Shown here piece by piece: positions 13,759 through 51,459 of a DNA stretch of 64,000 nt; the first letter of the stretch is position 1; each line of letters starts with the position of its first letter. The position numbers and the translations under genes were made by a program. The notes under the pieces are model-generated. The model worked only from the letters and a program-made list of their open reading frames with translations, did not search any database and was not told where the DNA came from. The DNA comes from Dendrobates tinctorius (lineage: Eukaryota), in assembly GCF_039654945.1 (NCBI RefSeq), contig NW_027361818.1, positions 8,246,001 to 8,310,000 on the forward strand, read 5' to 3'.

Positions 13759-14514
13759 CTCTTACCAAACACCTCCAGCTTTTATGACACAGCAATGTGA
13801 TGGATTAGCTTACAGCAGAGCCCAGTGTCATTACAGAACTCTAGTACTGGCTTTCCTACAGCAGTCAGTGTGGTGGGAGGTAAGTGCAGATGAGCTTACA
13901 GCCCTTGGAGAGCTGCAGTATGTGTATGTCATTACAATCTACCCTGCTGAAAACCTCTCCCCACATCAGCTGCTGGAAGAAGGCTGGAGGTTTTCATGAT
14001 TAACTCGGCTGCACTCAACCTACCCTTACTTTTGCTGCGATGTGATAGCTGCAGGTGTTTGTATTGACAGTCTTGTCTGCAGTATTTCTCCCCCACACTG
14101 ACTGCTGTGATGTGAAAGCTGGAGGTGTATGTAATTAAATACTGATCACTGCGCACTAACCCAGGGACGACTAATCTTTACACAGCAAGTGAGGGAAAAA
14201 AAAATAAAAAAGCCTGGACTGCCCAGAGATCATTTTAAGATTAGTGTCCTGCCTGGACTTACAGAACACATCAAAGCAGATGATGAAGTAGAGATTGTGA
14301 CAGCTGGTGCCCCCAGCTGTCACAGCCAGACTCCTCACAAGATTTACATGTTTAGGAAGCATCACTGATTGTGCTTCCTTCTCCAGACCCAGTGATCACT
14401 CGTGTAGGAGATTCTGCCCTAGGCAGGTGGATGAAATTTATAATGCAGGTCAATTATATTAAATGTGAACAAGGGATTAAAGGTATATCTGATCTTCCAT
14501 CATACAACCCGAAG

Positions 14515-23220: not shown

Positions 23221-26200
23221 TACAGTGTGAACGCTCCCTTATTATATGGGGGGGGGGTAAACGCTCCCTTATGATATGGGGGGGTGCAGTGTGAACGCTC
23301 CCTTATGGTATGGGGGGATACAGTGTGAACGCTCCCTTATGGTATGGGGGGATACAGTGTGAACGCTCCCTTATTATATGGGGGGGGGTAAACGCTCCCT
23401 TATGATATGGGGGGGTGCAGTGTGAACGCTCCCTTATGGTATGGGGGGATACAGTGTGAACGCTCCCTTATGATATGGGGGGATGCAGTGTGAGCGCCCC
23501 CTTATGGTATGGGGGGATGCAGTGTGAGTGCTCCCTTATGGTATGGGGGGGATGCAGCGTGAACGCTCCCTTATGATATGGGGGGGATGCAGCGTGAACG
23601 CTCCCTTATATGGGGGGGATGCAGTGTGAACGCTCCCTTATATGGGGGGATGCAGTGTGAACGCTCCCTTATATGGGGGGGATGCAGTGTGAACGCTCCC
23701 TTATATGGGGGGATGCAGCGTGAACGCTCCCTTATGATATGGGGGGGATGCAGCGTGAACGCTCCCTTATGATATGGGGGGAATACAGTGTGAACGCTCC
23801 CTTATGATATGGGGGGATGCAGTGTGAATGCTCCCTTATGATATGGGGGGGATGCAGCGTGAACGCCCCCTTATGATATGGGGGGATGCAGTGTGAACGC
23901 TCCCTTATATGGGGGGAAGCAGTGTGAACGCTCCCTTATGGTATGTGGGGATACAGTGTGAACGCTCCCTTATGATATGGGGGGGATGCAGCGTGAACGC
24001 TCCCTTATGATATGGGGGGATGCAGTGTGAACGCTCCCTTATGATATGGGGGGATGCAGTGTGAACGCTCCCTTATGATATGGGGGGATACAGTGTGAAC
24101 GCTCCCTTATGATATGGGGGGGATGCAGCGTGAACGCTCCCTTATGATATGGGGGGATGCAGCGTGAACGCTCCCTTATATGGGGGGAAGCAGTGTGAAC
24201 ACTCCCTTATGATATGGGGGGGATGCAGCGTGAACGCTCCCTTATGATATGGGGGGATGCAGTGTGAACGCTCCCTTATGATATGGGGGGATACAGTGTG
24301 AACGCTCCCTTATGATATGGGGGGGATGCAGCGTGAACGCTCCCTTATGATATGGGGGGATGCAGCGTGAACGCTCCCTTATATGGGGGGAAGCAGTGTG
24401 AACGCTCCCTTATGGTATGTGGGGATACAGTGTGAACGCTCCCTTATGATATGGGGGGGATACAGTGTGAACGCTCCCTTATGATATGGGGGGATGCAGT
24501 GTGAACGCTCCCTTATGATATGGGGGGATACAGTGTGAACGCTCCCTTATGATATGGGGGGGATACAGTGTGAACGCTCCCTTATGATATGGGGGATGCA
24601 GTGTGAGCGCCCCCTTATGGTATGGGGGGATACAGTGTGAACGCTCCCTTATGGTATGGGGGGATGCAGTGTGAACGCTCCCTTATGATATGGGGGGATA
24701 CAGTGTGAACGCTCCCTTATGGAATGGGGGGATGCAGTGTGAACGCTCCCTTATGATATGGGGGATGCAGTGTGAGCGCCCCCTTATGGTATGGGGGGAT
24801 ACAGTGTGAACGCTCCCTTATGGTATGGGGGGATGCAGTGTGAACGCTCCCTTATGGTATGGGGGGATGCAGTGTGAACGCTCCCTTATGGAATGGGGGG
24901 ATGCAGTGTGAACGCTCCCTTATGATATGGGGGGGATACAGTGTGAACGCTCCCTTATGGTATGGGGGGATGCAGTGTGAACGCTCCCTTATGGTATGGG
25001 GGGGGATACAGTGTGAACGCTCCCTTATGGTATGGGGGGAATACAGTGTGAATGCTCCCTTATGATGTGGGGGGATACAGTGTGAACGCTCCCTTATGAT
25101 ATGGGGGGATACAGTGTGAACGCTCCCTTATGGTATGGGGGGGGATACAGTGTGAACGCTCCCTTATGGTATGGGGGGAATACAGTGTGAACGCTCCCTT
25201 ATGGTATGGGGGGGGATACAGTGTGAACGCTCCCTTATGGTATGGGGGGGGATACAGTGTGAACGCTCCCTTATGGTATGGGGGGAATACAGTGTGAACG
25301 CTCCCTTATGATATGGGGGATGCAGTGTGAGCGCCCCCTTATGGTATGGGGGGGGATACAGTGTGAGCGCCCCCTTATGATATGGGGGGATACAGTGTGA
25401 ACGCTCCCTTATGATATGGGGGATGCAGTGTGAGCGCCCCCTTATGGTATGGGGGGGGATACAGTGTGAACGCTCCCTTATGGTATGGGGGGAATACAGT
25501 GTGAACGCTCCCTTATGATATGGGGGGATACAGTGTGAACGCTCCCTTATGATATGGGGGGATACAGTGTGAACGCCCCCTTATGGTATGGGGGGAATAC
25601 AGTGTGAACGCTCCCTTATGATATGGGGGGATACAGTGTGAACGCTCCCTTATGATATGGGGGGATACAGTGTGAACGCTCCCTTATGGTATGGGGGGAA
25701 TACAGTGTGAACGCTCCCTTATGATATGGGGGGATACAGTGTGAACGCTCCCTTATGATATTGGGGATGCAGTGTGAGCGCCCCCTTATGGTATGGGGGG
25801 GGATACAGTGTGAACGCCCCCTTATGGTATGGGGGGGATGCAGTGTGAACGCTCCCTTATGATATGGGGGAATACAGTGTGAACGCTCCCTTATGATATG
25901 GGGGATGCAGTGTGAGCGCCCCCTTATGGTATGGGGGGAATACAGTGTGAACGCTCCCTTATGATATGGGGGGATACAGTGTGAACGCTCCCTTATGATA
26001 TGGGGGATGCAGTGTGAGCGCCCCCTTATGATATGGGGGATGCTGTGTGAACGCCCCCTTATGATATGGGGGGAATACAGTGTGAACGCTCCCTTATGAT
26101 ATGGGGGGATACAGTGTGAACGCTCCCTTATGATATGGGGGGATACAGTGTGAACGCCCCCTTATGGTATGGGGGGGATACAGTGTGAACGCCCCCTTAT

Positions 26201-27262
26201 GGTATGGGGGGGGATACAGTGTGAACGCTCCCTTATGGTATGGGGGGAATACAGTGTGAACGCTCCCTTATGATATGGGGGGATACAGTGTGAACGCTCC
26301 CTTATGATATTGGGGATGCAGTGTGAGCGCCCCCTTATGGTATGGGGGGGGATACAGTGTGAACGCCCCCTTATGGTATGGGGGGGATGCAGTGTGAACG
26401 CTCCCTTATGATACGGGGGGATACAGTGTGAACGCTCCCTTATGATATGGGGGATGCAGTGTGAGCGCCCCCTTATGGTATGGGGGGGGATACAGTGTGA
26501 ACGCTCCCTTATGATATGGGGGATGCAGTGTGAGCGCCCCCTTATGGTATGGGGGGGATACAGTGTGAACGCTCCCTTATGGTATGGGGGATGCAGTGTG
26601 AACGCTCCCTTATGGTATGGGGGATGCAGTGTGAGCGCCCCCTTATGGTATGGGGGGGAATACAGTGTGAACGTTCCCTTATGGTATGGGGGATGCAGTG
26701 TGAGCGCCCCCTTATGGTATGGGGGATGTAGTGTGAGCGCCCCCTTATGGTATGGGGGGGGATACAGTGTGAGCGCCCCCTTATGATATGGGGGATGTAG
26801 TGTGAGCGCCCCCTTATGGTATGGGGGATGTAGTGTGAGCGCCCCCTTATGGTATGGGGGGGGATACAGTGTGAGCGCCCCCTTATGGTATGGGGGGGGA
26901 TGCAGTGTGAACGCTCCCTTATGATATGGGGGGATACAGTGTGAACGCTCCCTTATGGTATGGGGGATGCAGTGTGAACGCTCCCTTATGGTATGGGGGG
27001 GATGCAGTGTGAACGCTCCCTTATGGTATGGGGGGGATGCAGTGTGAACGCTCCCTTATGATATGGGGGGATACAGTGTGAGCGCCCCCTTATGGTATGG
27101 GGGGGATACAGTGTGAACGCTCCCTTATATGGGGGGATGCAGTGTGAACACTCCCTTATGGTATGGGGGGGATGCAGTGTGAACGCTCCCTTATATGGGG
27201 GGATACAGTGTGAACGCTCCCTTATGGTATGGGGGGGATACAGTGTGAACGCTCCCTTATGG
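23221..27262. repeat. ~35-bp G-run minisatellite (CAGTGTGAACGCTCCCTTATGRTATGGGGGGATR)n
   Basis: Visible array between the divergent ZP and RANGRF promoters. Confidence 0.97.
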
Positions 27263-30270: not shown

Positions 30271-30730
30271 CGTTCTGGCACTGACTACGAGGTGGTGATG
30301 ATGCGGTGATGGACGTTGGGGTTTTCAGCCGCTCTGCACTGTTGTCCCTTCCTGTGTCCGCCCTCATGGCTCCCAGCGCTTGTGCTGTGTAATCTTAGAG
30401 CAGAGTGTGAGGTATAAGAGGGGCCGGATACAGCTGCGACCTATGGGGGCAGAGGTCTCAGGGTTCTGTAAACCCTTTCAATACTGTACATAACATGTCT
30501 AGAAATGTATAATAAAACATTTTCCAGATTTCGTCTGACATACAATGTGTAGAAAAATGTTCTCTACAACGTTAACAGACCTCCATTTATATTACACATA
30601 TTATCTCGTATGGTGTCTTTATTTAATGAGTATCTGTCATATAAGTGTCCCGTATAGTGGAGAGAGTGAGTCTACCGGCGTCCAAAACACAAAGGCACAC
30701 GCAAATAACAGGTATGGCGGCTTTATCTAT

Positions 30731-33700
30731 CTATTGTGAGTGTAGCAGACGAAGCGTCACATCAACACAGCAGTGTCCTCCACATCCAGAAACTGCACCA
30801 CAGGGACCTGAAGAGAACAGAAACACTGCCATAATACTGCACAAGAATATAACTACTATAATACTGCTCCTATGTACAAGAATATAACTACTATAATACT
30901 GCCCCCTATGTACAAGAATATAACTACTATAATACTGCCCCTATGTACAAGAATATAACTACTATAATACTGCCTCCTATGTACAAGAATATAACTACTA
31001 TAATACTGCTCCTATGTACAAGAATATAACTACTATAATACTGCTCCTATGTACAAGAATATAACTACTATAATACTGCCTCCTATGTACAAGAATATAA
31101 CTACTATAATACGGCTCCTATGTACAAGAATATAACTACTATAATACTGCCCCTATGTACAAGAATATAACTACTATAATACTGCCCCTATGTACAAGAA
31201 TATAACTACTATAATACTGCCTCCTATGTACAAGAATATAACTACTATAATACTGCTCCTATGTACAAGAATATAACTACTATAATACTGCCCCTATGTA
31301 CAAGAATATAACTACTATAATACTGCTCCTATGTACAAGAATATAACTACTATAATACTGCCTCCTATGTACAAGAATATAACTACTATAATACTGCTCC
31401 TATGTACAAGAATATAACTACTATAATACTGCCCCCTATGTACAAGAATATAACTACTATAATACTGCCCCTATGTACAAGAATATAACTACTATAATAC
31501 AGCTCCTATGTACAAGAATATAACTACTATAATACTGCTCCTATGTACAAGAATATAACTACTATAATACTGCTCCTATGTACAAGAATATAACTACTAT
31601 AATACTGCTCCTATGTACAAGAATATAACTACTATAATACTGCTCCTATGTACAAGAATATAACTACTATAATACTGCCTCCTATGTACAAGAATATAAC
31701 TACTATAATACGGCTCCTATGTACAAGAATATAACTACTATAATACTGCCCCTATGTACAAGAATATAACTACTATAATACTGCTCCTATGTACAAGAAT
31801 ATAACTACTATAATACTGCCTCCTATGTACAAGAATATAACTACTATAATACGGCTCCTATGTACAAGAATATAACTACTATAATACTGCCCCCTATGTA
31901 CAAGAATATAACTACTATAATACTGCTCCTATGTACAAGAATATAACTACTATAATACTGCTCCTATGTACAAGAATATAACTACTATAATACTGCTCCT
32001 ATGTACAAGAATATAACTACTATAATACTGCTCCTATGTACAAGAATATAACTACTATAATACTGCTCCTATGTACAAGAATATAACTACTATAATACTG
32101 CCCCATGTACAAGAATATAACTACTATAATACTGCCCCTATGTACAAGAATATAACTACTATAATACTGCTCCTATGTACAAGAATATAACTGCTATAAT
32201 ACTGCCCCCTATCTACAAGAATATAACTACTATAATACTGCCCCCTATCTACAAGAATATAACTACTATAATACTGCCCCCTATCTACAAGAATATAACT
32301 ACTATAATACTGCACCCTATGTACAAGAATATAACTACTATAATACTGCCCCCTATGTACAAGAATATAACTACTATAATACTGCCCCCTATGTACAAGA
32401 ATATAACTACTATAATACTGCCTCCTATGTACAAGAATATAACTACTATAATACTGCCTCCTATGTACAAGAATATAACTACTATAATACTGCCTCCTAT
32501 GTACAAGAATCTAACTAATACGGCTCCTATGTACATGAATATAACTACTATAATACTGCCCCATGTACAAGAATATAACTACTATAATACTGCCCCTATG
32601 TACAAGAATATAACTACTATAATACTGCTCCTATGTACAAGAATATAACTGCTATAATACTGCCCCCTATCTACAAGAATATAACTACTATAATACTGCC
32701 CCCTATCTACAAGAATATAACTACTATAATACTGCCCCCTATCTACAAGAATATAACTACTATAATACTGCACCCTATGTACAAGAATATAACTACTATA
32801 ATACTGCCCCCTATGTACAAGAATATAACTACTATAATACTGCCCCCTATGTACAAGAATATAACTACTATAATACTGCCTCCTATGTACAAGAATATAA
32901 CTACTATAATACTGCCTCCTATGTACAAGAATATAACTACTATAATACTGCCTCCTATGTACAAGAATATAACTACTATAATACTGCCTCCTATGTACAA
33001 GAATATAACTACTATAATACTGCCTCCTATGTACAAGAATCTAACTAATACGGCTCCTATGTACATGAATATAACTACTATAATACTGCCCCTATGTACA
33101 AGAATATAACTACTATAATACTGCCCCCTATATACAAGAATATAACTACTATAATGCTGCCCCCTATGTACAAGAATATAACTACTATAATACTGTTCCT
33201 ATGTGCAAGAATATAACTACTATAATACTGCCCCTATGTACAAGAATATAACTACTATAATACTGCCTCCTATGTACAAGACTATAACTACTATAATACG
33301 GCTCCTATGTACAAGAATATAACTACTATAATACTGCCTCCTATGTCCAAGAATATAACTACTATAATACTGCCCCTATGTACAAGAATATAACTACTAT
33401 AATACTGCCCCTATGTACAAGAATATAACTACTATAATACTGCCCCTATGTACAAGAATATAACTACTATAATACTGCCCCTATGTACAAGAATATAACT
33501 ACTATAATACTGCTCCTATGTACAAGAATATAACTACTATAATACTGCCTCCTATGTCCAAGAATATAACTACTATAATACTGCCCCTATGTACAAGAAT
33601 ATAACTACTATAATGCTGCCCCCTATGTACAAGAATATAACTACTATAATACTGTTCCTATGTACAAGAATATAACTACTATAATACTGCCCCTATGTAC

Positions 33701-36700
33701 AAGAATATAACTACTATAATACTGCCTCCTATGTACATGAATATAACTACTATAATACGGCTCCTATGTACAAGAATATAACTACTATAATACTGCCTCC
33801 TATGTCCAAGAATATAACTACTATAATACTGCCCCTATGTACAAGAATATAACTACTATAATACTGCCCCTATACACAAGAATATAACTACTATAATACT
33901 GCTCCTATGTACAAGAATATAACTACTATAATACTGTTCCTATGTACAAGAATATAACTACTATAATACTGTTCCTATGTACAAGAATATAACTACTATA
34001 ATACTGCTCCTATGTACAAGAATATAACTACTATAATACTGTTCCTATGTACAAGAATATAACTACTATAATACTGCCCCTATGTACAAGAATATAACTA
34101 CTATAATACTGTCCCCTATGTACAAGAATATAACTACTATAATACTGCCCCTATGTACAAGAATATAACTACTATAATACTGCCCCTATGTACAAGACTA
34201 TAACTACTATAATACTGCTCCTATGTACAAGAATATAACTACTATAATACTGCCCCCTATGTACAAGAATATAACTACTATAATACTGCTCCTATGTACA
34301 AGAATATAACTACTATAATACTGCCCCCTATGTAGAGGAATATAACTGCAGGATAACTTTTGACAGACAGTAGTTTCTGACCTGTTGTCTTCATACACAC
34401 CTTTTCGGGTCTTCTGAGTGTTCTGTTCGCCGTTACAAATTTAGGAGTTTTCCCAGAGATTGTTTAATAGACTCTAGGATAGAAGAGAGATATTAAAGTT
34501 CACTCATATTTGCAATAAGTCACTGTTTTGGGAGAGATTCTATCTATACAATCTTTCCACAGCTTGGTCCTGGGTGGGATCTTGGGTCCTTTTTGCAGAA
34601 GATGAAGGACCCATCGACATTCACCAGCACCGCCCACCCCCAAACGTAGACTGTTCTGACACCATTGGTGGCAAATGATCCAGAAGTCCTGGCTGTGATG
34701 CCCGTTGGACGCCCTATGTCCCAGCTCTACTTAGGACTATTATTATTTCCGTTTGGATGTGACGTCAGTATCGCCGTGGCCAGTAGTCTCCCAGAGAAGG
34801 AGTAACAAGGTCTATGATTTTGAGAACTTCATGGCTCGTAAAAAATGTCCACTATAGACTTAACGTGACCCATTTGTGGAGCTCCCTACTATAGGAGACT
34901 TGATAAATGGTGGTACACGGTGCTTGCGAGGGACCTTCTAATGGCTTTAATGTCTGGCTTTATGTGTTTTCATACAGACCTTTGGTCTTCTCTGTATTCT
35001 CTCTCACATCGCTGATGATCTCCTTCGCAGTGTCTTTGAGATGGTCGATATCCTTGCTGTTGTGTAAATCTGTGAAAAACTCGAGAAGAAAGAGACAGTG
35101 GTGATCAGATTGGTATCAGGACTCTGACCCTTCAGTACTTCCATCTTGTTCTTGTACCTTCTGTTTGATATACTCTTAAAGAATAACTTTTGGATACTTA
35201 TCCTAGGCTGGGAAAATCGAGATTTTCTATAATCGGAAAATTTTCGAACTGCTCAGTAATCTCTGTTTTTGGCCCCAATCTTTGGTGCCGCTTGTGGGAT
35301 GTCAATGGATGCCCGTAGTCTTTTGTGAAGGTCGGGAGTGTGAGACGGAGGTTTAGTGTCTAACCTTCTGCACTCGGTGCTTGTCCTTCTCAGATCTAAA
35401 CCATTGACGCCTTTATTTTGGATTGTTCCAATGAGACAAGGAAGGTCTGTTAGGTGTCACTGGCACATGTTGGAGAATAGGGCTGTTTTATGGGAAGATG
35501 CCTTGTCAGGTGGAAAGGGATCCTTCTACATTCTTTATTACATTGATTGAACTTCCAATTACTGTCAATGTCAGTAACGAGTCTTGGGTTAACTCTTACC
35601 AAGTTACCAATGTCACAGAATCTTTGTGCTACCTACAAGATTTCTCGAAGGTCAATGGCCATGGTTTCCCTACGTCTTACGTCTTGGGCCTGATGTCTTC
35701 ATACAGACCTTTGATTTTGCTCTCTTCGATGATGAACTTGTCCTGAGTGGTGTTTGTTCCGTTCAGTTCTGAATTCTTGATACCTTAATACAAAACAAAG
35801 AGCTGGGCGTTTAGTTTGTATTAGGGGTTTGTGTTAGAGGTTGTTAATAGTGACACCTATATTACATACTTTATTATGGGTATTAGTGTTGGAGGAGGTG
35901 GGGAGAAATGACTCTCCTACACGCTGCTTGGTGGTCATGTCTACAAATATTCTCACTTTGCAGAGCGGAACAGTCTGCTTTTCACGACATTGATTGAATG
36001 TCTTATGACATCATAGGTCTAAGCCAGCCTAGGGAAATTGCACTTAATTGGGACATGTATCATTATCTAACATTTTCCATGCTTTGTACGTCTGGCCACC
36101 ACTCTAGGTGACATTTCCTTGGATGCCATTACTCAGGAGTCAAGTGTTATGAGATGTGGGTAACCTGTGCTGCTAGTAGTGTATTGACAAATGGGTCCAA
36201 TAAAGGCATAGAGGGAAACTGTGGAGTTTAGTCTCTACGTGGTTTAAAGTGCTCTCGCTTTCTCATCAGGAGAACCAAAAAAGATTTTCTGAAGACTTGA
36301 CATTGAGGGTGTTCTCTAGATACCAACCTTCTACCATTTGTGTCGTGGTTCCTGTTACCCACAGATCGGATCCATTGACCACTTTGTTGTGAAATTGTCC
36401 TACATGAAGAAGACTGGGTGTTTAGTTTTCATTGAGGTTTTTCACCCCTATTGTCACAATCCAACAGGCGTTGGTCCAGCGGATGGAACAACACACTCAA
36501 CGGGATGGAAAAGGGGAGAGGAAGGCCCTAACAACGGGAACGAGGGATGGGACACTTCCTGAGCTTCAACCTGAGTCTGTCCCTGCACTCCCCTAACGGC
36601 TTGATCGCGTCCTTTCCCCCCCACCGCCGTCACGTACCTTGTCCCTAACTGTCACCTCTCAATGCCCTGACTAGTTCACTGGCCGGCAAGGGTGCTAGCA

Positions 36701-39700
36701 TCACCATTGCAGGGGATACTGACTAGCACGAGACAGATGAGGTAAATACACAAAACTTAGCTCCAGACTCCGCTGCTAAGCACACAGCAGAGGACACGGA
36801 AGCAGGACCCCAAACTCCACAGAAGAAGCAAATTCAGCGCAGACACTAGAAAGCTGCAACTGCAAGGCTGGTCTACGTAGAATAACTCACCAACAGTCAG
36901 CTGGTGCGTCAAGTGACTATTTAAAGGATGGTGTGCATGGTCACCACCAACATCAGCTGACCAGCAACACCGCCTCTGCCAGCAAGGAAACGGACATTAA
37001 CCCTTGCTGGCCTGAAAGGAAAAAAGCTACATTTAAATAATCGTGGAACCAGAGCTGCCACGAATCCAAACCTGAATCGTGATACCTATATTACATACTT
37101 TATTATGGGTATAAATGGTGGAGGAGGTGGGGAGAAACGACACTCATACACGTTGCTGGGTGGTCATGTCTACCAATATTCTCACGTTGCAGAGCGGAAT
37201 AGTCTTTCACGACATTGATTGAACTTGACATTGAGGGTGCTCTCTAGATACCAACCTTCTACCATTTGTGTCGAGGTTCCTGTTACCCTCAGATCAGATC
37301 CATTGTCCACTTCCTCATGAAATGGTCCTACAAGAAGAAGACTGAGTGTTTAGTTTGCATTGGGGGTTTGTCACCCTTATATTACATACTATTATGGGTA
37401 AAAGTGTTGAAGGCGGTGGGGAGAAATGACTTGTTCGCATACATCCTGCTTGGTGGTCATGTCTACAAATATTCTCACTTTGCAGGGATAAATAGTGTGG
37501 AGAAGGTGGAGAGAAATGACTCGTTCTCATACATCGCTGTCCTACAAGAAGAAGACTGGGATGATTGGTTGGTGGATCATGAGGTCATTGGTTTTTCTTG
37601 TTTGCCTAGGAACCAAGAAAAGAAGGTGTCGTACAGATGTCTAGCTAGCTCTACGTGATTTTCAGAAGGTTGACAATACGGTCAAACCGTCTGACTTTGA
37701 TTGAGCAGCTTGTTTTCTTCGCATTCCTGAACTACTGATGTCTTCATCTTGCTATTTGCTCGACTAGAGAATGTCACCACTTTACTCAGTGCACGTATCC
37801 TAGGCTCCGATGTGGAAACCACCACTTTACACAGTGCACGTATTCTAGGCTCCGATGTGGAAACCACCACTTTACACAGTGCACGTATCCTAGGCTCCGA
37901 TGTGGAAACCACCACTTTACTCAGTGCATGTATCCTAGGCTCCGATGTGGAAACCACCACTTTACACAGTGCACGTATCCTAGGCTCCGATGTGGAAACC
38001 ACCACTTTACACAGTGCACGTATCCTAGGCTCCGATGTGGAAACCACCACTTTACCCAGTGCACGTATCCTAGGCTCCGATGTGGAAACCACCACTTTAC
38101 CCAGTGCACGTATCCTAGGCTCCGATGTGGAAACCACCACTTTACCCAGTGCACGTATCCTAGGCTCCGATGTGGAAACCACCACTTTACCCAATGCACG
38201 TATCCTAGGCTCCAAATACTCGAAGAACATATCTCCATTCTAGAGGAATCCTTGACTCCAGCTCGCCACCATGGCTTTCCTGCTATCCTCACGCTACCCA
38301 CCACTCTGCTTCATACATACTTACCAGCAACTATATTCTGGACGGCTCCTTTAGTGGTGGACATGTGTAACGAATTCTCAGAGCCCTGTCCAACCTCAGC
38401 ATGTTGCAATAAGGCATTATGAAGGGGTAGATGAATAGGCTGAGTAAATTCTGACAAAAGAAAAAAAATTACATTATTAAGATGATCCCATCTTTCGTTT
38501 CTTTTCAGAATCTTGAGGAACGTACCAAACAGAACCCAATTAAATGAGTGGAACCTCCAAACAATATCTCATCTCAACCTCCTCGACCTGTAAAAGTGTC
38601 ACGTGAGGAGCAAGGAGAGATACTAGGATTTTCCCAATGTCGGGAGAGGACACTACCTATGTCGATAGTGTATCCCCTGACGAAGGACAAGTTCAGAAAC
38701 GCGCGTCGGGGTATGCTCCGCACGGCGTTCCCCATACACCCAGGTAATTTATTATTTGTCTGCCTATTTTTCTGCCCATATTAATTGGCTTAATCTTGCA
38801 GTCATGGCGGATATCTTACATGATGTTTCCCAACCACAGTCTCGGCTCCTTACTATAATTGTGATATATGACCTATTGTACTTGGACATGCCCAGCCAGT
38901 TTATTTTCTGTGAGCACTCAATATCATTTATTACAACCATTAGGACCATCTCATTCTAGTGACCAGCCTTATCCTGCTTTCTTCTTTTCATACTGCACTA
39001 TGCACTTTATTTTGATTTCATTTTTGTGAGTTATTACAATTTTAAATCAATAATTGATCTATTTACAAGTATTTCTTGTTCTCACTCTGTTCCGTACTTC
39101 CTTTCTTTGGTTATACGCTTGTTCCCGAATGGTCTGCCATTCTCCTCTATACAGCATGTATATATCACTCACCGTATACTAGATTTACTATTATCATTTC
39201 TATATTACTAGTGATATATATCTATTGTTAAGTTCAGTAAGTGTTTTAGACCTTGAGATTGTTGATGTTTTCAACAATTTTGGTTCTCAAGTCCTCTGAC
39301 AGTCCTCTTTCTGTTCTCCATGCTTAGTGTGGCACGCAAACACACAATGCAAAGATTGAGCCAACTTCTCCCCTTTTTATCTGGTGTCAGGTGTGGTTTT
39401 CATACTGCTCACACCTGTTACTTGCCACAGGTGAGTGTGAACGAGCATCACTTGCTTGAAACAAAGTTGTTTACCCACAATTTTGGAAAGGTGCCAACAA
39501 TTTTGTCCACTCTTTGGGGTTTTGTGTGAAATTATGTCCAATTTGCCTTTTTTTCAGTTTCTGTGTGTTATTCCAATACACACAAAGGAAATAAACCTGT
39601 GTATAACAAAACTTGGGGAATTGAAATAATTTTCTGGTAGAAACACTTCACTTTCTGGAACAATTTCAAGGGTGCCAACACTTTCAGCCATGACTGTATG

Positions 39701-42700
39701 TGACACAAGAATCAATTAGAAATGACACATTCCCTTTCTAATTTAGGAAAATATTTTTACATTTTAATAAATACAAAAAGGAGAATAGGCCGATGCAAAA
39801 GTTTGGGCATCCTGCATAGTTAGTGCATTTGTTTGGAGGCCTAGGTACTATCAGGGTGCAGTGGACCCAATTAAATATGGCGCCAACACCGATGAAACAA
39901 CCACTCTCAGCCTACCAATCCATACCACCACATGAACATATATATATATGACACATGAATCATACCACCATATAGTGCATATATAATATATATGTGACAC
40001 ATAAATCATTCCGTCATATAGTGCACATATAATATACTGTATATGTGACACATAAATCATTCCGTCATATAGTGCATATATAATATACTGTATATGTGAC
40101 ACATAAATCATACCACCATATAGTGCATATATAATATATATGTGACACATAAATCATACTGTCATATAGTGCACATATAATATACAGTATATGTGACACA
40201 TGATTCATACCACCATATAGTGCATATATAATTTATATGTGACACATAAATCATTCCGTCATATAGTGCATATATAATATACTGTATATGTGACACATAA
40301 ATCATTTCGTCATACAGTGCATATATAATATACTGTATATGTGACACATAAATCATACCGCCATATAGTGCATATATAATATATATGTGACACATAAATC
40401 ATTCCGTCATATAGTGCATATATAATATACTGTATATGTGACACATAAATCATTTCGTCATATAGTGCATATATAATATATGCGACGCATAAATCATACC
40501 ACCATATAGTGCATATATAACATATACTGTATGTGACACATAAATCATACCACCATATAGTGCATATATAATATATATGTGACACATGAATCATACCGTC
40601 AAAGAGTGCACATATAATATATATGTGACACATGAATCATACCGCCATATGATGCACAGATAATATATATGTGACACATGAATCATACCGTCATATAGTG
40701 CACATATAATATATGGGACACATGAATCATACCGCCCTATGATGCACAGATAATATATATGTGACAAATGAATCATACTGCCATATAGTGCACATATAAT
40801 GTGACACATAAATCATACCGCCATATGATGCACAGATAATATACGTGAAACATGAATCATACCGCCATATGAACATATAATATATATGTGACACATGATT
40901 CATACCACCATATGATATATATATGTGACATAAATCAAACCGCCATATAGTGCACATATAATATATATGTGACACATGAATCTTACCGTCATATAGTGCA
41001 TATATAATATATGTGACACATGAATCATACTGTCATATAGTGCACATATAATATACAGTATATGTGACACATGATTCATACCACCATATAGTGCATATAT
41101 AATATATATGTGACACATAAATCATACTGTCATATAGTGCACATATAATATACAGTATATGTGACACATGATTCATACCACCATATAGTGCATATATAAT
41201 ATACTGTATATGTGACACATAAATCATACCACCATATAGTGCATATATAATATATATGTGACACATAAATCATACTGTCATATAGTGCACATATAATATA
41301 CAGTATATGTGACACATGATTCATACCACCATATAGTGCATACAGTGGGGAAAAAAAGTATTTAGTCAGTCAGCAATAGTGCAAGTTCCACCACTTAAAA
41401 AGATGAGAGGCGTCTGTAATTTACATCATAGGTAGACCTCAACTATGGGAGACAAACTGAGAAAAAAAAATCCAGAAAATCACATTGTCTGTTTTTTTTT
41501 CATTTTATTTGCATATTATGGTGGAAAATAAGTATTTGGTCAGAAACAAGCAATCAAGATTTCTGGCTCTCACAGACCTGTAACTTCTTCTTTAAGAGTC
41601 TCCTCTTTCCTCCACTCATTACCTGTAGTAATGGCACCTGTTTAAACTTGTTATCAGTATAAAAAGACACCTGTGCACACCCTCAAACAGTCTGACTCCA
41701 AACTCCACTATGGTGAAGACCAAAGAGCTGTCAAAGGACACCAGAAACAAAATTGTAGCCCTGCACCAGGCTGGGAAGACTGAATCTGCAATAGCCAACC
41801 AGCTTGGAGTGAAGAAATCAACTGTGGGAGCAATAATTAGAAAATGGAAGACATACAAGACCACTGATAATCTCCCTCGATCTGGTGCTCCACGCAAAAT
41901 CCCACCCCGTGGGGTCAGAATGATCACAAGAACGGTGAGCAAAAATCCCAGAACCACACGGGGGGACCTAGTGAATGAACTGCAGAGAGCTGGGACCAAT
42001 GTAACAAGGCCTACCATAAGTAACACACTACGCCACCATGGACTCAGATACTGCAGTGCCAGACGTGTCCCACTGCTTAAGCCTGTACATGTCCGGGCCC
42101 ATCTGAAGTTTGCTAGAGAGCATTTGGATGATCCAGAGGAGTTTTGGGAGAATGTCCTATGGTCTGATGACACCAAACTGGAACTGTTTGGTAGAAACAC
42201 AACTTGTCGTGTTTGGAGGAAAAAGAATACTGAGTTGCATCCATCAAACACCATACCTACTGTAAAGCATGGTGGTGGAAACATCATGCTTTGGGGCTGT
42301 TTCTCTGCAAAGGGGCCAGGACGACTGATCCGGGTACATGAAAGAATGAATGGGGCAATGTATCGTGAGATTTTGAGTGCAAACCTCCTTCCATCAGCAA
42401 GGGCATTGAAGATGAAACGTGGCTGGGTCTTTCAACATGACAATGATCCAAAGCACACCGCCAGGGCAACGAAGGAGTGGCTTCGTAAGAAGCATTTCAA
42501 GGTCCTGGAGTGGCCTAGCCAGTCTCCAGATCTCAACCCTATAGAAAACCTTTGGAGGGAGTTGAAAGTCCGTGTTGCCAAGCGAAAAGCCAAAAACATC
42601 ACTGCTCTAGAGGAGATCTGCATGGAGGAATGGGCCAACATACCAACAACAGTGTGTGGCAACCTTGTGAAGACTTACAGAAAACGTTTGACCTCTGTCA

Positions 42701-43888
42701 TTGCCAACAAAGGATATATCACAAAGTATTGAGATGAAATTTTGTTTCTGACCAAATACTTATTTTCCACCATAATATGCAAATAAAATGAAAAAAAAAC
42801 AGACAATGTGATTTTCTGGATTTTTTTTTCTCAGTTTGTCTCCCATAGTTGAGGTCTACCTATGATGTAAATTACAGACGCCTCTCATCTTTTTAAGTGG
42901 TGGAACTTGCACTATTGCTGACTGACTAAATACTTTTTTTCCCCACTGTATATAATTTATATGTGACACATAAATCATTCCGTCATATAGTGCATATATA
43001 ATATACTGTATATGTGACACATAAATCATTTCGTCATACAGTGCATATATAATATACTGTATATGTGACACATAAATCATACCGCCATATAGTGCATATA
43101 TAATATATATGTGACACATAAATCATTCCGTCATATAGTGCATATATAACATATACTGTATGTGACACATAAATCATACCACCATATAGTGCATATATAA
43201 TATATACTGTATGTGACACATAAATCATACCACCATATAGTGCATATATAATATATATGTGACACATGAATCATACCGTCATATAGTGCACATATAATAT
43301 ATATGTGACACATGAATCATACCGCCATATGATGCACAGATAATATATATGTGACACATGAATCATACCGTCATATAGTGCACATATAATATATGGGACA
43401 CATGAATCATACCGCCCTATGATGCACAGATAATATATATGTGACAAATGAATCATACTGCCATATAGTGCACATATAATGTGACACATAAATCATACCG
43501 CCATATGATGCACAGATAATATACGTGAAACATGAATCATACCGCCATATGAACATATAATATATATGTGACACATGATTCATACCACCATATGATATAT
43601 ATATGTGACATAAATCAAACCGCCATATAGTGCACATATAATATATATGTGACACATGAATCTTACCGTCATATAGTGCATATATAATATATGTGACACA
43701 TGAATCATACTGTCATATAGTGCACATATAATATACAGTATATGTGACACATGATTCATACCACCATATGGTGCACAGATAATATATATTGGACACATGA
43801 ATCATACCGCCATTTTGCGCACAGATAATGTATCAGACTTACCTGTATAGCATACAAATGCAGCCAGAATCAACAATGAGCCTCTCAT
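30731..43888 (-). CDS. Candidate secreted glycoprotein gene made of duplicated phase-1 mini-exons (unrecognised; may be partly decayed)
   Basis: Exons 43888-43843 ([18 protein letters not shown]|gtaagt), 38450-38325, 37327-37256, 36399-36328, 35783-35709, 35069-34980, optional 34473-34401 (contains a stop), terminal 30807-30731 with AATAAA at 30623-30618. All junctions are GT-AG and phase 1. TATAAA at 44069-44064. Confidence 0.5.
30825..34350. repeat. 35/36-bp minisatellite (same family as 6550-10570)
   Basis: Same unit in the same orientation. Confidence 0.97.
36452..37084 (-). mobile_element. Solo LTR (Gypsy-like), 633 bp
   Basis: TGTCAC...GTGATA inverted termini and a perfect 5-bp TSD CCTAT (36447-36451 / 37085-37089). 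Orientation inferred from a TTTAAATA box on the minus strand. Confidence 0.8.
37775..38213. repeat. 45-bp minisatellite, ~10 near-identical copies
   Basis: (CACCACTTTACMCAGTGCACGTATCCTAGGCTCCGATGTGGAAAC)n with no spacers. Confidence 0.95.
39245..39696 (-). mobile_element. Tc1-like transposon 5' fragment (decayed)
   Basis: Minus strand TA|CAGTCATGGCTGAAAGTGTTGGCACC terminus with an inner direct repeat (~39490), and a frameshifted transposase start (MENRKR / [11 protein letters not shown]). Confidence 0.75.
41343..42948 (+). mobile_element. Full-length Tc1/mariner (DD34E) DNA transposon, 1606 bp
   Basis: TA target duplication at 41341-41342 and 42949-42950, 207-bp TIRs (41343-41549 / 42742-42948) with no mismatch found, and an intact transposase ORF. 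Confidence 0.98.
41710..42732 (+). CDS. Tc1 transposase, 340 aa, uninterrupted
   Basis: Paired-like HTH N-terminus, RSGAPRK linker, WSDDTK / FQHDNDPKH / SPDLNPIE with 34 residues between the second D and E. Confidence 0.97.
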
Positions 43889-44105
43889 ATTTCCAAAACA
43901 CTGGACATGTACATCTGGCATCTGCTTTATGTACCTATTAACTAAGGGGCGCGGAGACCTGGGGCACCGCACAATGTCACCTTCAAACAATGGTGATGAA
44001 CGTGGAAGGAGACAGGAATGTTTTACACCATGTGGCCAATCGCTCAGCGAAATAATGGAGGAGTTTATAATAAATCGAAGTTATGAGATAGAAGGTACAT
44101 AGATA

Positions 44106-47100
44106 TGGAGGAGACACCTGTACAGTGTGGCTGCACTGAGGGTGGAGGAGACCACGACCTGAACAGGGTGACTGCACTGAGGGTGGAGGAGACCACGACC
44201 TGAATAGGGTGACTGCACTGAGGGTGGAGGAGAACACGTCCTGAACAGGGTGACTGCACTGAGGGTGGAGGAGACCACGACCTGAACAGGGTGACTGCAC
44301 TGAGGGTGGAGGAGAACACGACCTCAACAGGGTGACTGCACTGAGGGTGGAGGAGAACACGTCCTCAACAGGGTGACTGCACTGAGGGTGGAGGAGACCA
44401 CGACCTGAACAGAGTGACTGCACTGAGGGTGGAGGAGACCACGACCTCAACAGGGTGACTGCACTGAGGGTGGAGGAGACCACGACCTGAACAGGGTGAC
44501 TGCACTGAGGGTGGAGGAGACCACGACCTCAACAGGGTGACTGCACTGAGGGTGGAGGAGAACACGTCCTCAACAGGGTGACTGCACTGAGGGTGGAGAC
44601 CACGACCTGAACAGAGTGACTGCACTGAGGGTGGAGGAGACCACGACCTCAACAGGGTGACTGCACTGAGGGTGGAGACCACGACCTCAACAGAGTGACT
44701 GCACTGAGGGTGGAGGAGACCACGACCTCAACAGGGTGACTGCACTGAGGGTGGAGACCACGACCTGAACAGAGTGACTGCACTGAGGGTGGAGGAGAAC
44801 ACGTCCTGCACAGGGTGACTGCACTGAGGGTGGAGGAGACCACGACCTCAACAGGGTGACTGCACTGAGGGTGGAGGAGACCACGACCTCAACAGGGTGA
44901 CTGCACTGAGGGTGGAGGAGAACACGTCCTCAACAGGGTGACTGCACTGAGGGTGGAGGAGACCACGACCTCAACAGGGTGACTGCACTGAGGGTGGAGG
45001 AGAACACGTCCTCAACAGGGTGACTGCACTGAGGGTGGAAGAGACCACGACCTGAACAGAGTGACTGCACTGAGGGTGGAGGAGACCACGACCTCAACAG
45101 GGTGACTGCACTGAGGGTGGAGGAGACCACGACCTGAACAGGGTGACTGCACTGAGGGTGGAGGAGACCACGACCTCAACAGGGTGACTGCACTGAGGGT
45201 GGAGGAGACCACGACCTGAATAGGGTGACTGCACTGAGGGTGGAGGAGACCACGACCTGAACAGGGTGACTGCACTGAGGGTGGAGGAGACCACGACCTC
45301 AACAGGGTGACTGCACTGAGGGTGGAGGAGAACACGTCCTCAACAGGGTGACTGCACTGAGGGTGGAAGAGACCACGACCTGAACAGAGTGACTGCACTG
45401 AGGGTGGAGGAGACCACGACCTCAACAGGGTGACTGCACTGAGGGTGGAGGAGACCACGACCTGAACAGGGTGACTGCACTGAGGGTGGAGGAGACCACG
45501 ACCTCAACAGGGTGACTGCACTGAGGGTGGAGGAGAACACGTCCTCAACAGGGTGACTGCACTGAGGGTGGAGACCACGACCTGAACAGAGTGACTGCAC
45601 TGAGGGTGGAGGAGACCACGACCTCAACAGGGTGACTGCACTGAGGGTGGAGACCACGACCTCAACAGAGTGACTGCACTGAGGGTGGAGGAGACCACGA
45701 CCTCAACAGGGTGACTGCACTGAGGGTGGAGACCACGACCTGAACAGAGTGACTGCACTGAGGGTGGAGGAGAACACGTCCTGCACAGGGTGACTGCACT
45801 GAGGGTGGAGGAGACCACGACCTCAACAGGGTGACTGCACTGAGGGTGGAGGAGACCACGACCTCAACAGGGTGACTGCACTGAGGGTGGAGGAGAACAC
45901 ATCCTCAACAGGGTGACTGCACTGAGGGTGGAGGAGACCACGACCTCAACAGGGTGACTGCACTGAGGGTGGAGGAGACCACACCTGTACAGGGTGATTG
46001 CACTGAGGGTGGAGGAGAACACGTCCTGCACAGGGTGACTGCACTGAGGGTGGAGGAGAACACGTCCTGCACAGGGTGACTGCACTGAGGGTGGAGGAGA
46101 CCACGACCTCAACAGGGTGACTGCACTGAGGGTGGAGGAGACCACGACCTCAACAGGGTGACTGCACTGAGGGTGGAGGAGAACACGTCCTCAACAGGGT
46201 GACTGCACTGAGGGTGGAGGAGACCACGACCTCAACAGGGTGACTGCACTGAGGGTGGAGGAGACCACACCTGTACAGGGTGATTGCACTGAGGGTGGAG
46301 GAGACCACGACCTGTACAGTATGGCTGCACTGAGGGTGGAGGAGACCACATCCCTATACAGTGTGGCTGCACTGAGGGTGGAGGAGACCACGTCCCTGTA
46401 CAGTGTGGCTGCACTGAGGGTGGAGGAGACCACGACCTGAACAGAGTGACTGCACTGAGGGTGGAGGAGACCACGACCTGAACAGAGTGACTGCACTGAG
46501 GGTGGAGGAGACCACGACCTCAACAGGGTGACTGCACTGAGGGTGGAGGAGAACACGTCCTACACAGGGTGACTGCACTGAGGGTGGAGGAGACCACGTC
46601 CCTGTACAGTATGGCTGCACTGAGGGTGGAGGAGACCACGTCCCTATACAGTATGGCTGCACTGAGGGTGGAGGAGACCACGTCCCTATACAGTGTGGCT
46701 GCACTGAGGGTGGAGGAGACCACGACCTGAACAGAGTGACTGCACTGAGGGTGGAGGAGAACACGTCCTCAACAGGGTGACTGCACTGAGGGTGGAGGAG
46801 AACACGACTGTACAGGGTGACTGCACTGAGGGTGTAGGAGACCACGACCTGTACAGAGTGGCTTCACTGAGGGTGGATGAGACCACGTCCCGGTACAGTA
46901 TGGCTGCACTGAGGGTGGAGGAGACCACATCCCTATACAGTGTGGCTGCACTGAGGGTGGAGAAGACCACATCCCTGTACCGTATGGCTGCACTGAGGGT
47001 GGAGGAGACCACGTCCCTGTACAGTATGGCTGCACTGAGGGTGGAGGAGACCACGTCCCTATACAGTGTGGCTGCACTGAGGGTGTAGGAGACCACATCC

Positions 47101-50100
47101 CTGTACAGTATGGCTGCACTGAGGGTGGAGGAGATCACGTCCCTGTACAGTATGGCTGCACTGAGGGTGGAGGAGACCACGTCCCTGTACAGTGTGGCTG
47201 CACTGAGGGTGGAGGAGACCACGTCCCTGTACAGTATGGCTGCACTGATGGTGGAGGAGACCACGTCCCTGTACAGTATGGCTGCTCTGAGGGTGGAGGA
47301 CTCCACGTCCCTATACAGTGTGGCTGCACTGAGGGTGGAGGAGACCACATCCCTATACAGTGTGGCTTCACTGAGGGTGGAGAAGACCACTTCCCTGTAC
47401 AGTGTGGCTGCACTGAGGGTGGAGGAGACCACGTCCCTGTACAGTGTAGCTGCACTGAGGGTGGAGGAGACCACGTCCCTGTACAGTGTGGCTGCACTGA
47501 GGGTGGAGGAGACCACGTCCCTATACAGTGTGGCTGCACTGAGGGTGGGGGAGACCACGACCTCAACAGGGTGACTGCACTGAGGGTGGAGGAGACCACG
47601 ACCTGAACAGAGTGACTGCACTGAGGGTGGAGGAGACCACGACCTGAACAGAGTGACTGCATTGAGGGTGGAGGAGACCACAACCTCAACAGGGTGACTG
47701 CACTGAGGGTGGAGGAGAACACGTCCTGCACAGGGTGACTGCACTGAGGGTGGAGGAGACCACGACCTCAACAGGGTGACTGCACTGAGGGTGGAGGAGA
47801 ACACGTCCTCAACAGGGTGACTGCACTGAGGGTGGAGGAGACCACGACCTCAACAGGGTGACTGCACTGAGGGTGGAGGAGACCACGACCTCAACAGGGT
47901 GACTGTACTGAGGGCGGAGGAGACCACACCTGTACAGGGTGATTGCACTGAGGGTGGAGGAGACCACGACCTGTACAGTATGGCTGCACTGAGGGTGGTG
48001 GAGACCACATGCCTATACAGTGTGGCTGCACTGAGGGTGGAGGAGACCACGACCTGAACAGAGTGACTGCACTGAGGGTGGAGGAGACCACGACCTGAAC
48101 AGAGTGACTGCACTGAGGGTGGAGGAGACCACGACCTCAACAGGGTGACTGCACTGAGGGTGGAGGAGAACACGTCCTGCACAGGGTGACTGCACTGAGG
48201 GTGGAGGAGAACACGTCCTGCACAGAGTGACTGCACTGAGGGTGGAGGAGACCACGTCCCTGTACAGTATGGCTGCACTGAGGGTGGAGGAGACCACGTC
48301 CCTATACAGTATGGCTGCACTGAGGGTGGAGGAGACCACGTCCCTATACAGTGTGGCTGCACTGAGGGTGGAGGAGACCACGACCTGAACAGAGTGACTG
48401 CACTGAGGGTGGAGGAGAACACGTCCTCAACAGGGTGACTGCACTGAGGGTGGAGGAGAACACGACTGTACAGGGTGACTGCACTGAGGGTGTAGGAGAC
48501 CACGACCTGTACAGAGTGGCTTCACTGAGGGTGGAGGAGACCACGTCCCTGTACAGTATGGCTGCACTGAGGGTGGAGGAGACCACGTCCCTATACAGTG
48601 TGGCTGCACTGAGGGTGGAGGAGACCACATCCCTGTACAGTATGGCTGCACTGAGGGTGGAGGAGACCACGTCCCTGTACAGTATGACTGCACTGAGGGT
48701 GGAGGAGACCACGTCCCTATACAGTGTGGCTGCACTGAGGGTGGAGGAGACCACATCCTTGTACAGTATGGCTGCACTGAGGGTGGAGGAGACCACGTCC
48801 CTGTACAGTATGGCTGCACTGAGGGTGGAGGAGACCACGTCCCTGTACAGTGTGGCTGCACTGAGGGTGGAGGAGACCACGTCCCTATACAGTGTGGCTG
48901 CACTGAGGGTGGAGGAGACCACATCCCTATACAGTGTGGCTTCACTGAGGGTGGAAGAGACCACTTCCCTGTACAGTGTGGCTGCACTGAGGGTGGATGA
49001 GACCACGTCCCTGTACAGTGTAGCTGCACTGAGGGTGGAGGAGACCACGTCCCTGTACAGTATGACTGCACTGAGGGTGGAGGAGACCACGTCCCTATAC
49101 AGTGTGGCTGCACTGAGGGTGGAGGAGACCACATCCTTGTACAGTATGGCTGCACTGAGGGTGGAGGAGACCACGTCCCTGTACAGTATGGCTGCACTGA
49201 GGGTGGAGGAGACCACGTCCCTGTACAGTGTGGCTGCACTGAGGGTGGAGGAGACCACGTCCCTATACAGTGTGGCTGCACTGAGGGTGGAGGAGACCAC
49301 ATCCCTATACAGTGTGGCTTCACTGAGGGTGGAGGAGACCACTTCCCTGTACAGTGTGGCTGCACTGAGGGTGGATGAGACCACGTCCCTGTACAGTGTA
49401 GCTGCACTGAGGGTGGAGGAGACCACGTCCCTGTACAGTGTGGCTGCACTGAGGGTGGAGGAGACCACGTCCCTGTACAGTATGGCTGCACTGAGGGTGG
49501 AAGAGACCACGTCCCTATACAGTGTGGCTGCACTGAGGGTGGGGGAGACCACGACCTGAACAGAGTGACTGCACTGAAGGTGGAGGAGACCACGACCTGA
49601 ACAGAGTGACTGCACTGAGGGTGGAGGAGACCACGACCTGAACAGAGTGACTGCACTGAGGGTGGAGGAGACCACGACCTCAACAGGGTGACTGCACTGA
49701 GGGTGGAGGAGAACACGTCCTGCACAGGGTGACTGCACTGAGGGTGGAGGAGAACACGTCCTGCACAGGGTGACTGCACTGAGGGTGGAGGAGACCACGT
49801 CCCTGTACAGTATGGCTGCACTGAGGGTGGAGGAGACCACGTCCCTATACAGTATGGCTGCACTGAGGGTGGAGGAGACCACGTCCCTATACAGTGTGGC
49901 TGCACTGAGGGTGGAGGAGACCACGACCTCAACAGGGTGACTGCACTGAGGGTGGAGGAGAACACGTCCTCAACAGGGTGACTGCACTGAGGGTGGAGGA
50001 GACCACGACCTGTACAGGGTGACTGCACTGAGGGTGTAGGAGACCACGACCTGTATAGGGTGGCTTCACTGAGGGTGGAGGAGACCACGTCCCTGTACAG

Positions 50101-50842
50101 TATGGCTGCTCTGAGGGTGGAAGAGACCACGTCCCTATACAGTGTGGCTGCACTGAGGGTGGAGGAGACCACTTCCCTGTACAGTGTGGCTGCACTGAGG
50201 GTGGAGGAGACCACGTCCCTGTACAGTGTAGCTGCACTGAGGGTGGAGGAGACCACGTCCCTGTACAGTGTGGCTGCACTGAGGGTGGAGGAGACCACGT
50301 CCCTGTACAGTATGGCTGCACTGAGGGTGGAGGAGACCACGTCCCTATACAGTGTGGCTGCACTGAGGGTGGAGGAGACCACATCCCTGTACAGTATGGC
50401 TGCACTGAGGGTGGAGGAGACCACGTCCCTGTACAGTATGGCTGCACTGAGGGTGGAGGAGACCACGTCCCTGTACAGTGTGGCTGCACTGAGGGTGGAG
50501 GAGACCACGTCCCTGTACAGTATGGCTGCACTGAGGGTGGAGGAGACCACGTCCCTGTACAGTATGGCTGCACTGAGGGTGGAGGAGACCACGTCCCTGT
50601 ACAGTGTGGCTGCACTGAGGGTGGAGGAGACCACGTCCCTGTACAGTATGGCTGAACTGAGGGTGGAGGAGACCACGTTCCTGTACAGTCTGGCTGCTCT
50701 GAGGGTGGAGGAGACCACGTCCCTGTACAGTATGGCTGCACTGAGGGTGGAGGAGACCACGTTCCTGTACAGTCTGGCTGCTCTGAGGGTGGAGGAGACC
50801 ACTTCCCTGTACAGTGTGGCTGCACTGAGGGTGGAGGAGACC
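44106..50842. repeat. 41/42-bp minisatellite (CTGCACTGAGGGTGGAGGAGACCACG core)
   Basis: 6.7-kb visible array. The 41-mer dominates on the left and the 42-mer on the right. Confidence 0.97.
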
Positions 50843-51459
50843 CAGTCTTGATCCTAGGTGTCTGTCTCTAGTCGGTGACTCTCACTTTCTGTATATGATG
50901 AGTTGTTGATGTGACCGCCCGTCGCCATCTCACCTTCCTGCACTTTCTCCTCAGACTAATGTACTAATTATGGTTAATCATTAATGATCGCACTGATCAG
51001 AGATCTCTGACCGGCAATATCCCTGATAACCAGATCATTAGTCACCACATATGAGGCCTGAACATGGTGGCGCTTGTAGTCCTCCTCCTGTGGGAGGTTC
51101 TCTCCCTCCACCATTGATCAGTCACCAGATCCATGTCAGGGCATCTTCTGGGAACGTGAATTCGGAGTCATGTGACTGCGGCTTGGGGCGACAATGTCTC
51201 AGAAGAGGAGATATGAGAAAACCATGTTACCATGGAGACACAACTGTCATGGCAGCCCAGTGGCTCCAACATGTAGCGTTATCACTGTGTAACGAGGATG
51301 CAGGTTTATAGCCGCAGTTCACTCTCATGTTTCAATGGCCGACCTGTCTGCCTAAACAAAATATAAAAATAAACAGTGATCCATTTTCTAAATCTTTGAA
51401 GTTGTAAAATTTATTTTAAAATGAAAACTTTATTGCTACAAACGTGCAAACATTATCCA

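Follow-up and report, generated by a model that had tools for sequence, protein, structure and literature searches.

A 64-kb stretch of the genome of the poison frog Dendrobates tinctorius (contig NW_027361818.1; hereafter the window, within which all positions are counted) carries on its minus strand a genuine gene of at least eight exons, seven of them coding and one a probable 3' untranslated region (3'UTR) exon, with canonical phase-1 borders. We consider it highly likely that this is a dendrobatid protein-coding gene, the orthologue of LOC143774245 of Ranitomeya variabilis, whose product is a clade-restricted, disordered, N-glycosylated exocrine protein with a helical C-terminus. A first-pass annotation, made from the sequence alone, had proposed at this place a hidden gene for a secreted glycoprotein assembled from mini-exons, and the gene is indeed real, spliced, lineage-restricted and fast-evolving; its product begins in the manner of a signal peptide and keeps its N-glycosylation sequons. 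The gene was hidden only in part: up to exon 6 the coding chain exists as predicted, and its orthologues are already entered in RefSeq, as uncharacterized predictions, for two other dendrobatid genomes.

Exons, spliced transcripts and orthologues

Exon 1 (43843-43888) begins its coding part with the ATG at 43888 and ends at a GTAAGT donor; it provides 15 hydrophobic, signal-peptide-like codons and one base of a split codon (phase 1), and the 5'UTR extends upstream. Exon 2 (38325-38450, phase 1-1) codes for the N-terminal region of the mature protein and is 126 nucleotides (nt) long in all three species compared, D. tinctorius, R. variabilis and Phyllobates terribilis. Exons 3 (37256-37327) and 4 (36328-36399), of 72 nt each, are the first and second copies of a 24-residue repeat with an NGS sequon; exon 5 (35709-35783, 75 nt), with two sequons (NGT and NTT), is a diverged member of the same family of repeat exon-intron units; and exon 6 (34980-35069, 90 nt) codes for a charged segment with a tendency to form helices. 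The coding sequence actually ends in exon 7 (34401-34473), made up of 12 whole codons and the split codon, a TAA at 34435-34433, 32 nt of 3'UTR and a conserved donor. Exons 2 to 6 all lie between an AG acceptor rich in pyrimidines and a GT donor; their lengths divide by three, and they begin and end in phase 1. All seven stretches of the chain first proposed, which ran from exon 6 to an exon at 30807 instead of to exon 7, are present with canonical AG/GT borders; the sizes of exons 2 to 6 (126, 72, 72, 75 and 90 nt, symmetric phase 1) are as predicted, as are the N-G-S/T sequons of exons 3, 4 and 5.

Splicing was examined in four public sequencing runs (X1, X2, X6 and X7), found with 34900-38500 and aligned, as Logan contigs, to 34400-37770, a stretch that excludes the 45-bp tandem array of intron 2, so that the exon 2-3 junction rests on a loose end. 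X2, X6 and X7 share one species label, and X2 is mostly 99% or more alike to the window; X1 bears another organism label and its intron contigs are about 95% alike. A 710-nt contig of X2 (record 11) joins 37328-37255, 36398-36326 and 35781-35709, that is, exons 3, 4 and 5, and beyond 37328 it runs on in a loose end that matches, in reverse complement, the final 30 nt of exon 2; a second X2 joint links 35709 to 35069, exon 5 to exon 6. In X1 the exon 4-5 joint is seen, the loose ends at every border spell the neighbouring exons, and a contig of depth 8,880 is identical across exon 4. X1 depth is 6,500-33,000 in exon bins and 0-127 in intron bins (2-127 where contigs lie). X6 and X7 have next to nothing over 34400-37770. 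The predicted splicing of exons 2-3-4-5-6 is thus borne out at exact borders by spliced contigs in X1 and X2, and the transcript reaches an extreme abundance in one library, from a close relative, and is absent from others. It is the spliced contigs, together with the ratio of exon to intron depth, that lead us to take X1 and X2 as RNA.

In the X1 mRNA, exon 5 is followed by some 15 additional in-frame letters before the start of exon 6 as placed in the window (35069-35083), which suggests that exon 6 is longer in this relative, as it is in P. terribilis (120 nt, against 90 nt in the window).

Orthologues were sought with a 41-residue in-frame part of exon 2 as phmmer query against 1.84 billion representative proteins. 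It matched XP_077117749.1 (LOC143774245, uncharacterized, R. variabilis; E 6.2e-11, 75% identity) and XP_073507107.1 (uncharacterized, P. terribilis; E 3.7e-9, 69% identity); two other matches were to unrelated low-complexity repeat proteins and were set aside. The R. variabilis gene is flanked by a Mito_carr gene and a Mog1 gene, the same SLC25A11/RANGRF interval, and both flanks of its locus align to the window on matching sides; judged through this annotated orthologous locus, the RANGRF-like and SLC25A11-like neighbours originally named are confirmed. By their exon maps the three species have one phase-1 chain in common, with donors and acceptors conserved and both relatives ending in an exon of the type that starts at 34473. 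On similarity and position, then, the gene is the orthologue of LOC143774245, and in divergence the window is nearer to Ranitomeya than to Phyllobates.

The R. variabilis and P. terribilis proteins, both RefSeq entries with no name, domain or known function, share with the window the signal exon, exon 2, the NGS repeat exon, the helical exons and the type of terminal exon, all in phase 1. They differ in the number of live NGS repeats: one in R. variabilis, three in P. terribilis and two in the window. The R. variabilis model omits exon 5 although an intact-looking 84-nt copy exists (about 24630-24713 of that locus), and for this reason the model may be one of several in-frame isoforms.

For wider searches XP_073507107.1 and XP_077117749.1 stood in for the whole protein, the exons of the window being joined only to follow frame and composition. 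Searches with XP_073507107.1 and with XP_077117749.1:107-213 returned nothing beyond the two dendrobatid proteins; no named protein appeared among the matches of these or of the exon 2 search; and Pfam gave no match above threshold for either of these queries or for exon 2. A PDB sequence search with XP_073507107.1, at E up to 1, found five unrelated chains only, and the ESM Atlas offered no usable match. A literature search by peptide motifs and LOC number brought up no relevant paper, and two frog skin transcriptome papers (PMC6385980, Mantella; PMC7678260, Oophaga) make no mention of such a transcript in the passages searched. The first-pass annotation could assign the protein to no named family, and that assessment holds across the sequence, Pfam, PDB and ESM Atlas searches. 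As far as annotated proteomes show, the family appears so far to be confined to the dendrobatid clade.

The predicted protein and the case for translation

The precursor would have 173 residues, and the mature protein 158, should the signal peptide be cut off behind residue 15 (Cys at -3, Thr at -1), where exons 1 and 2 meet; residues 4-14 of the signal-like segment have a mean Kyte-Doolittle hydrophobicity of 2.45. The mature protein has no cysteine, 23 acidic and 15 basic residues (net -8), 8 His, 28 Ser or Thr among its 158 residues (18%) and 3 Pro, and the protein has four sequons. The AlphaFold2 model of XP_073507107.1 has a predicted local distance difference test score (pLDDT) of 42, with unstructured repeats and helices at 139-203 (pLDDT 50-64); the ESM Atlas model has a pLDDT of 0.45. 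The maximum hydrophobic moment is 0.64 in exon 6 and 0.54 in the C-terminal segment from exon 7. From these features we picture a protein whose N-terminal and repeat part would be disordered and carry N-glycans at the invariant NGS in every 24-residue repeat, whose Ser/Thr runs would probably be O-glycosylated, and whose last 65 or so residues would form amphipathic helices. Together with rapid evolution and an abundance that is extreme in one library only, the signal peptide, the glycosylation modules and the disorder point to a bulk secretory glycoprotein, exported by an exocrine gland as a soluble component of mucus or secretion; conceivable roles would include those of a lubricant, an antimicrobial, a carrier or a pheromone.

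A bolder proposal goes further: that this protein dominates an exocrine secretion of poison frogs, for example that of the skin glands, as a clade-specific orphan glycoprotein acting as matrix or carrier for alkaloids or as a stand-in for antimicrobial peptides, with repeat number and C-terminal helix under diversifying selection. We hold this to be a speculative extension with perhaps one chance in eight or so behind it, were one forced to wager.

No better placed is the idea that the gene product is cut into small bioactive peptides of an antimicrobial or hormone-like kind, with the amphipathic C-terminal peptide as the active part. Very high abundance, exon-level duplication, rapid evolution and a C-terminal exon coding for a short amphipathic segment (the moment of 0.54 given above) all fit such a precursor. 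The Xenopus skin precursors of the caerulein and magainin/PGLa type are likewise abundant secretory products, with repeated units encoded on tandemly duplicated exon-intron units, and are cut at dibasic sites into small peptides. The growth of the present gene by exon duplication would be similar by analogy, but there is no sequence similarity, the repeats hold glycosylation sequons rather than peptide cassettes, and neither the exon translations of the window nor XP_077117749.1 nor XP_073507107.1 contains a KR, RR or RxxR/furin-type site. The C-terminal peptide, moreover, has a net charge of about +1 and is conserved neither in length (13, 12 and 8 residues) nor in sequence. These properties make a peptide precursor unlikely, and we keep to the glycoprotein.

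In build the glycoprotein would resemble, by analogy only, exocrine proteins of the lacritin/dermcidin type in mammals, which are small, cysteine-free, acidic and made in bulk, their N-terminal half being disordered and glycosylated and their C-terminus forming amphipathic helices. Those proteins, however, have no repeat exons and lie in another chromosomal neighbourhood; no dermcidin chain was found in the PDB at E up to 1 for XP_073507107.1, nor was there a Pfam match. With secreted mucin-like glycoproteins carrying Pro/Thr/Ser (PTS) repeats it shares the signal peptide, species-variable tandem repeats, Ser/Thr runs and glycosylation sequons, but here there are one to three 24-residue repeats, one per exon, with the low Pro and the 18% Ser+Thr noted above, and no cysteine-rich terminal domains. 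Membership of the mucin/PTS-repeat class was rejected: its repeats are long and Pro/Thr/Ser-rich, and the window has only two, of 24 residues. The secretory calcium-binding phosphoprotein (SCPP) genes were rejected because they have phase-0 coding introns, while all introns between coding exons here are phase 1. A zona pellucida (ZP) or egg-coat protein was rejected too, no ZP domain being found in the Pfam search and the one ZP-N match belonging to a separate gene at 17393-17632.

That the transcript is translated at all can be questioned: it could be an abundant spliced non-coding RNA whose frame is fortuitous, or recent and untranslated. The ratio of nonsynonymous to synonymous substitution rates (dN/dS), a check suggested at the outset, is 0.59 for the window against R. 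variabilis and 0.86 against P. terribilis, and 1.03 between exons 3 and 4; exon identity is about that of the introns; and no homologue or domain came out of the sequence, Pfam, PDB and ESM Atlas searches. A non-coding RNA would account for all this. It would not be expected to keep a frame open through seven exons in three genera, nor to conserve the signal exon (13 of 15 residues identical in R. variabilis and P. terribilis) and the NGS of all six live repeat exons across the three species. Differences in coding exon length are without exception multiples of three (126/126/126 for exon 2; 72 or 69 for the repeats; 75/84/84 for exon 5; 90/90/120 for exon 6), whereas the 3'UTR exon has indels that are not, and this contrast is the main evidence for translation. 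The stop codon, 32 nt before the last junction, is by the established rule near enough to it to avoid nonsense-mediated decay, which fits an mRNA that escapes this pathway. We therefore regard a non-coding RNA as improbable, slightly more so than a peptide precursor.

Several points nevertheless weigh against a translated exocrine glycoprotein. The between-species dN/dS values come from 56-79 codons and are not clearly below 1; the exons are no better conserved than the flanking introns, so that purifying selection on the sequence seems weak, with substitution close to neutral. The kinds of the runs, 'RNA?' for X1 and '?' for X2, are guesses in the record, and the runs have no tissue label, 'exocrine gland' coming from abundance and signal peptide only. 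The signal peptide itself was judged by hydrophobicity and the -3/-1 rule, and glycosylation, disorder and helices are predictions from models of low confidence. Finally, at the 3' end discussed next, the junction of 34401 to 30807 lies outside the contig-covered stretch, which ended at 34400, and record 9 of X2 runs 159 nt past 34400.

The two ends of the transcript

The gene was at first proposed to pass from exon 6 directly to an exon at 30807, giving a protein of 185 residues (185 codons and a stop) with a cysteine-rich C-terminus. This chain has in its favour an open joined frame that ends in a stop, and a good, conserved acceptor at 30807 with a conserved AATAAA. But in X1 and X2, the two runs that cover exon 6, the exon is joined to 34473, with 506 nt skipped and GT..AG on the minus strand (34980 to 34473), and no joint of 34980 to 30807 is seen. 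Read from exon 6 in phase 1, exon 7 gives 13 residues and then the TAA, and the C-termini of both XP_077117749.1 and XP_073507107.1 match this exon. The exon at 30807, compared with its R. variabilis orthologue, has indels of 7, 4, 6, 7 and 1 nt, the first 7-nt indel just past the acceptor, and any frame is broken. As the main form, the junction of exon 6 to 30807 is largely refuted, and we give it very little credence; the cysteine-rich peptide has no part in the main product, which at 173 residues is shorter than proposed.

Exon 7 ends at a donor, AAAAG/GTGTGT, at 34401/34400, 32 bases past the stop, and no AATAAA occurs between the stop codon and the 35-bp satellite that starts at 34347; R. 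variabilis has kept the stop, this donor, the 30807 acceptor and the AATAAA that follows it. Because exon 7 holds the stop, no AATAAA precedes the satellite, the ends are conserved and the indels break the frame, we read 30807 to about 30600 as a probable non-coding 3'UTR exon and 34400-30808 as a probable 3.6-kb 3'UTR intron, nearly all of it filled with the satellite (30841-34347, about 99 copies). The AATAAA of the first-pass annotation is thus present (30623-30618), but it would close a 3'UTR exon and not a coding one.

The 35-bp satellite stands in the last intron of the gene in all three species (window 30841-34347; R. variabilis locus 26440-27220; P. terribilis locus 30850-33676), and varies greatly in length: about 0.8 kb in R. 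variabilis, 3.5 kb in the window and more than 2.8 kb in P. terribilis. A second array of it, 3.8 kb long, lies 24 kb away at 6805-10576.

At the other end, the start had been placed behind a TATA box at 44069. This element (44075-44065) lies in a conserved block of about 230 nt directly upstream of the ATG (43889-44117), a putative 5'UTR and/or proximal promoter with 89% mean column identity among the three species, each of a different genus, which is above that of the coding exons; it also contains a second conserved element, ATAAAG, some 40 nt before the ATG (43930-43925). A start behind the TATA would leave only about 150 nt upstream of the ATG. In record 11 of X2, however, 490 nt stand before exon 3 and leave 318 nt upstream of the ATG, so that part at least of the block is transcribed. 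In the RefSeq model of R. variabilis a splice acceptor is annotated exactly at the spot of the window's 'TATA'; the model reads through the 5'UTR, and its first exon lies 11 kb upstream, beside the SLC25A11-like gene. The 318-nt upstream transcript and this acceptor both speak against the TATA box as start site, and the promoter assignment is doubtful.

The window holds a copy of the R. variabilis first exon at about 51134-51046 (86% identity, donor GTGACT kept), adjoining the SLC25A11 promoter, and the 41/42-bp satellite that separates this copy from exon 1 has an orthologue in R. variabilis; 51046-51134 is thus a possible far-upstream first exon in this genome also. The 41/42-bp satellite is GC-rich and covers 6.7 kb directly upstream of exon 1 (44106-50850); in R. 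variabilis (3284-7610 and 13366-14149) it is split by an insertion resembling the window's retroelement at 61-64 kb.

Exon-unit duplication and the surrounding sequence

The tandem duplication of phase-1 mini-exons that had been suggested is borne out as serial duplication of whole exon-intron units. Exons 3 and 4, themselves 87.5% identical, each belong to a 158-nt unit, and the two units share 89% identity over both the exon and its flanks. Each of exons 3, 4 and 5 is preceded by a shared intron motif of 120-150 nt; a donor block, AAAG/GTnTGTATGAA, is common to exons 5, 6 and 7; and the part of exon 7 that is not translated can be aligned to the end of the coding sequence of exon 6. Dead copies are found as well. 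One, truncated, lies in intron 5 of the window (35365-35410): the acceptor and the 5' portion of the exon are missing, what remains corresponds to the VNG..DL core of exons 3 and 4, and no contig joins to it. Another, of 65 nt, at about 24108-24172 of the R. variabilis locus, has a 7-nt deletion, a frameshift and an in-frame stop. Judged by these likenesses, the gene body is a family of serially duplicated symmetric units undergoing birth and death.

We propose that a single exon-intron unit, duplicated in tandem time after time, gave rise to the gene body. Since every internal exon is phase 1-1, copies could be gained, lost or skipped without breaking the frame, which would explain why the three species have one, two or three live repeats alongside dead copies. 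Exon 7 itself would be one such copy, derived from a unit resembling exon 6; once it had gained a stop codon, the old donor and last exon downstream of it would have become 3'UTR. The last coding exon is 74% and 67% identical between species, against 89% and 87% in its flanks.

That 34.3-38.5 kb might instead be a dispersed transposon or satellite family can be dismissed almost entirely: the region is indeed rich in repeats, with a Tc1/mariner element inside intron 1, the 45-bp array inside intron 2 and flanking satellites on either side, but the gene's exons have no other copy in the 64-kb window, exons 3 and 4 matching only each other, the same units occupy the same syntenic place in two other genera, and they are spliced into mRNA.

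The Tc1/mariner element of intron 1 (41710-42732, plus strand) has an uninterrupted open reading frame (ORF) for a 340-residue, Sleeping Beauty-like transposase with HTH_SB, HTH_Tnp_Tc3_2 and DDE_3 domains. At 61117-63237 on the plus strand lies a gypsy-type retroelement with a gag-like ORF and protease and RVT_1 domains. A 28-bp satellite (53801-56299, minus strand; 79 copies, 71% GC) leaves three frames of that strand open. One of these, an 832-residue ORF with a signal-like ATG start, Pro/His/Thr-rich repeats and no Pfam match, is probably an artefact that the satellite produces inside or next to the SLC25A11-like gene. The egg-coat neighbour is real to the extent that a ZP-N exon lies at 17393-17632 on the minus strand (E 1.2e-7), with ORFs at 18-21.7 kb that look like further exons of a ZP gene; the link hinted at between it and the glycoprotein has no support beyond adjacency.

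With this locus, a group of frogs whose skin chemistry is under study gains a verified, very highly expressed secretory gene of restricted taxonomic range, in a family that previously consisted of two unnamed automatic predictions only. Its model is now corrected to 173 residues with no cysteine after the signal peptide, in place of 185 residues with a cysteine-rich tail. It provides a clean example of a gene that would grow and shrink by duplication and death of symmetric phase-1 exon-intron units, including a duplicated exon apparently turned terminator and an old last exon pushed into the 3'UTR. If the tissue in which it is expressed is skin or a reproductive gland, it would be a direct candidate for the biology of poison-frog secretion.

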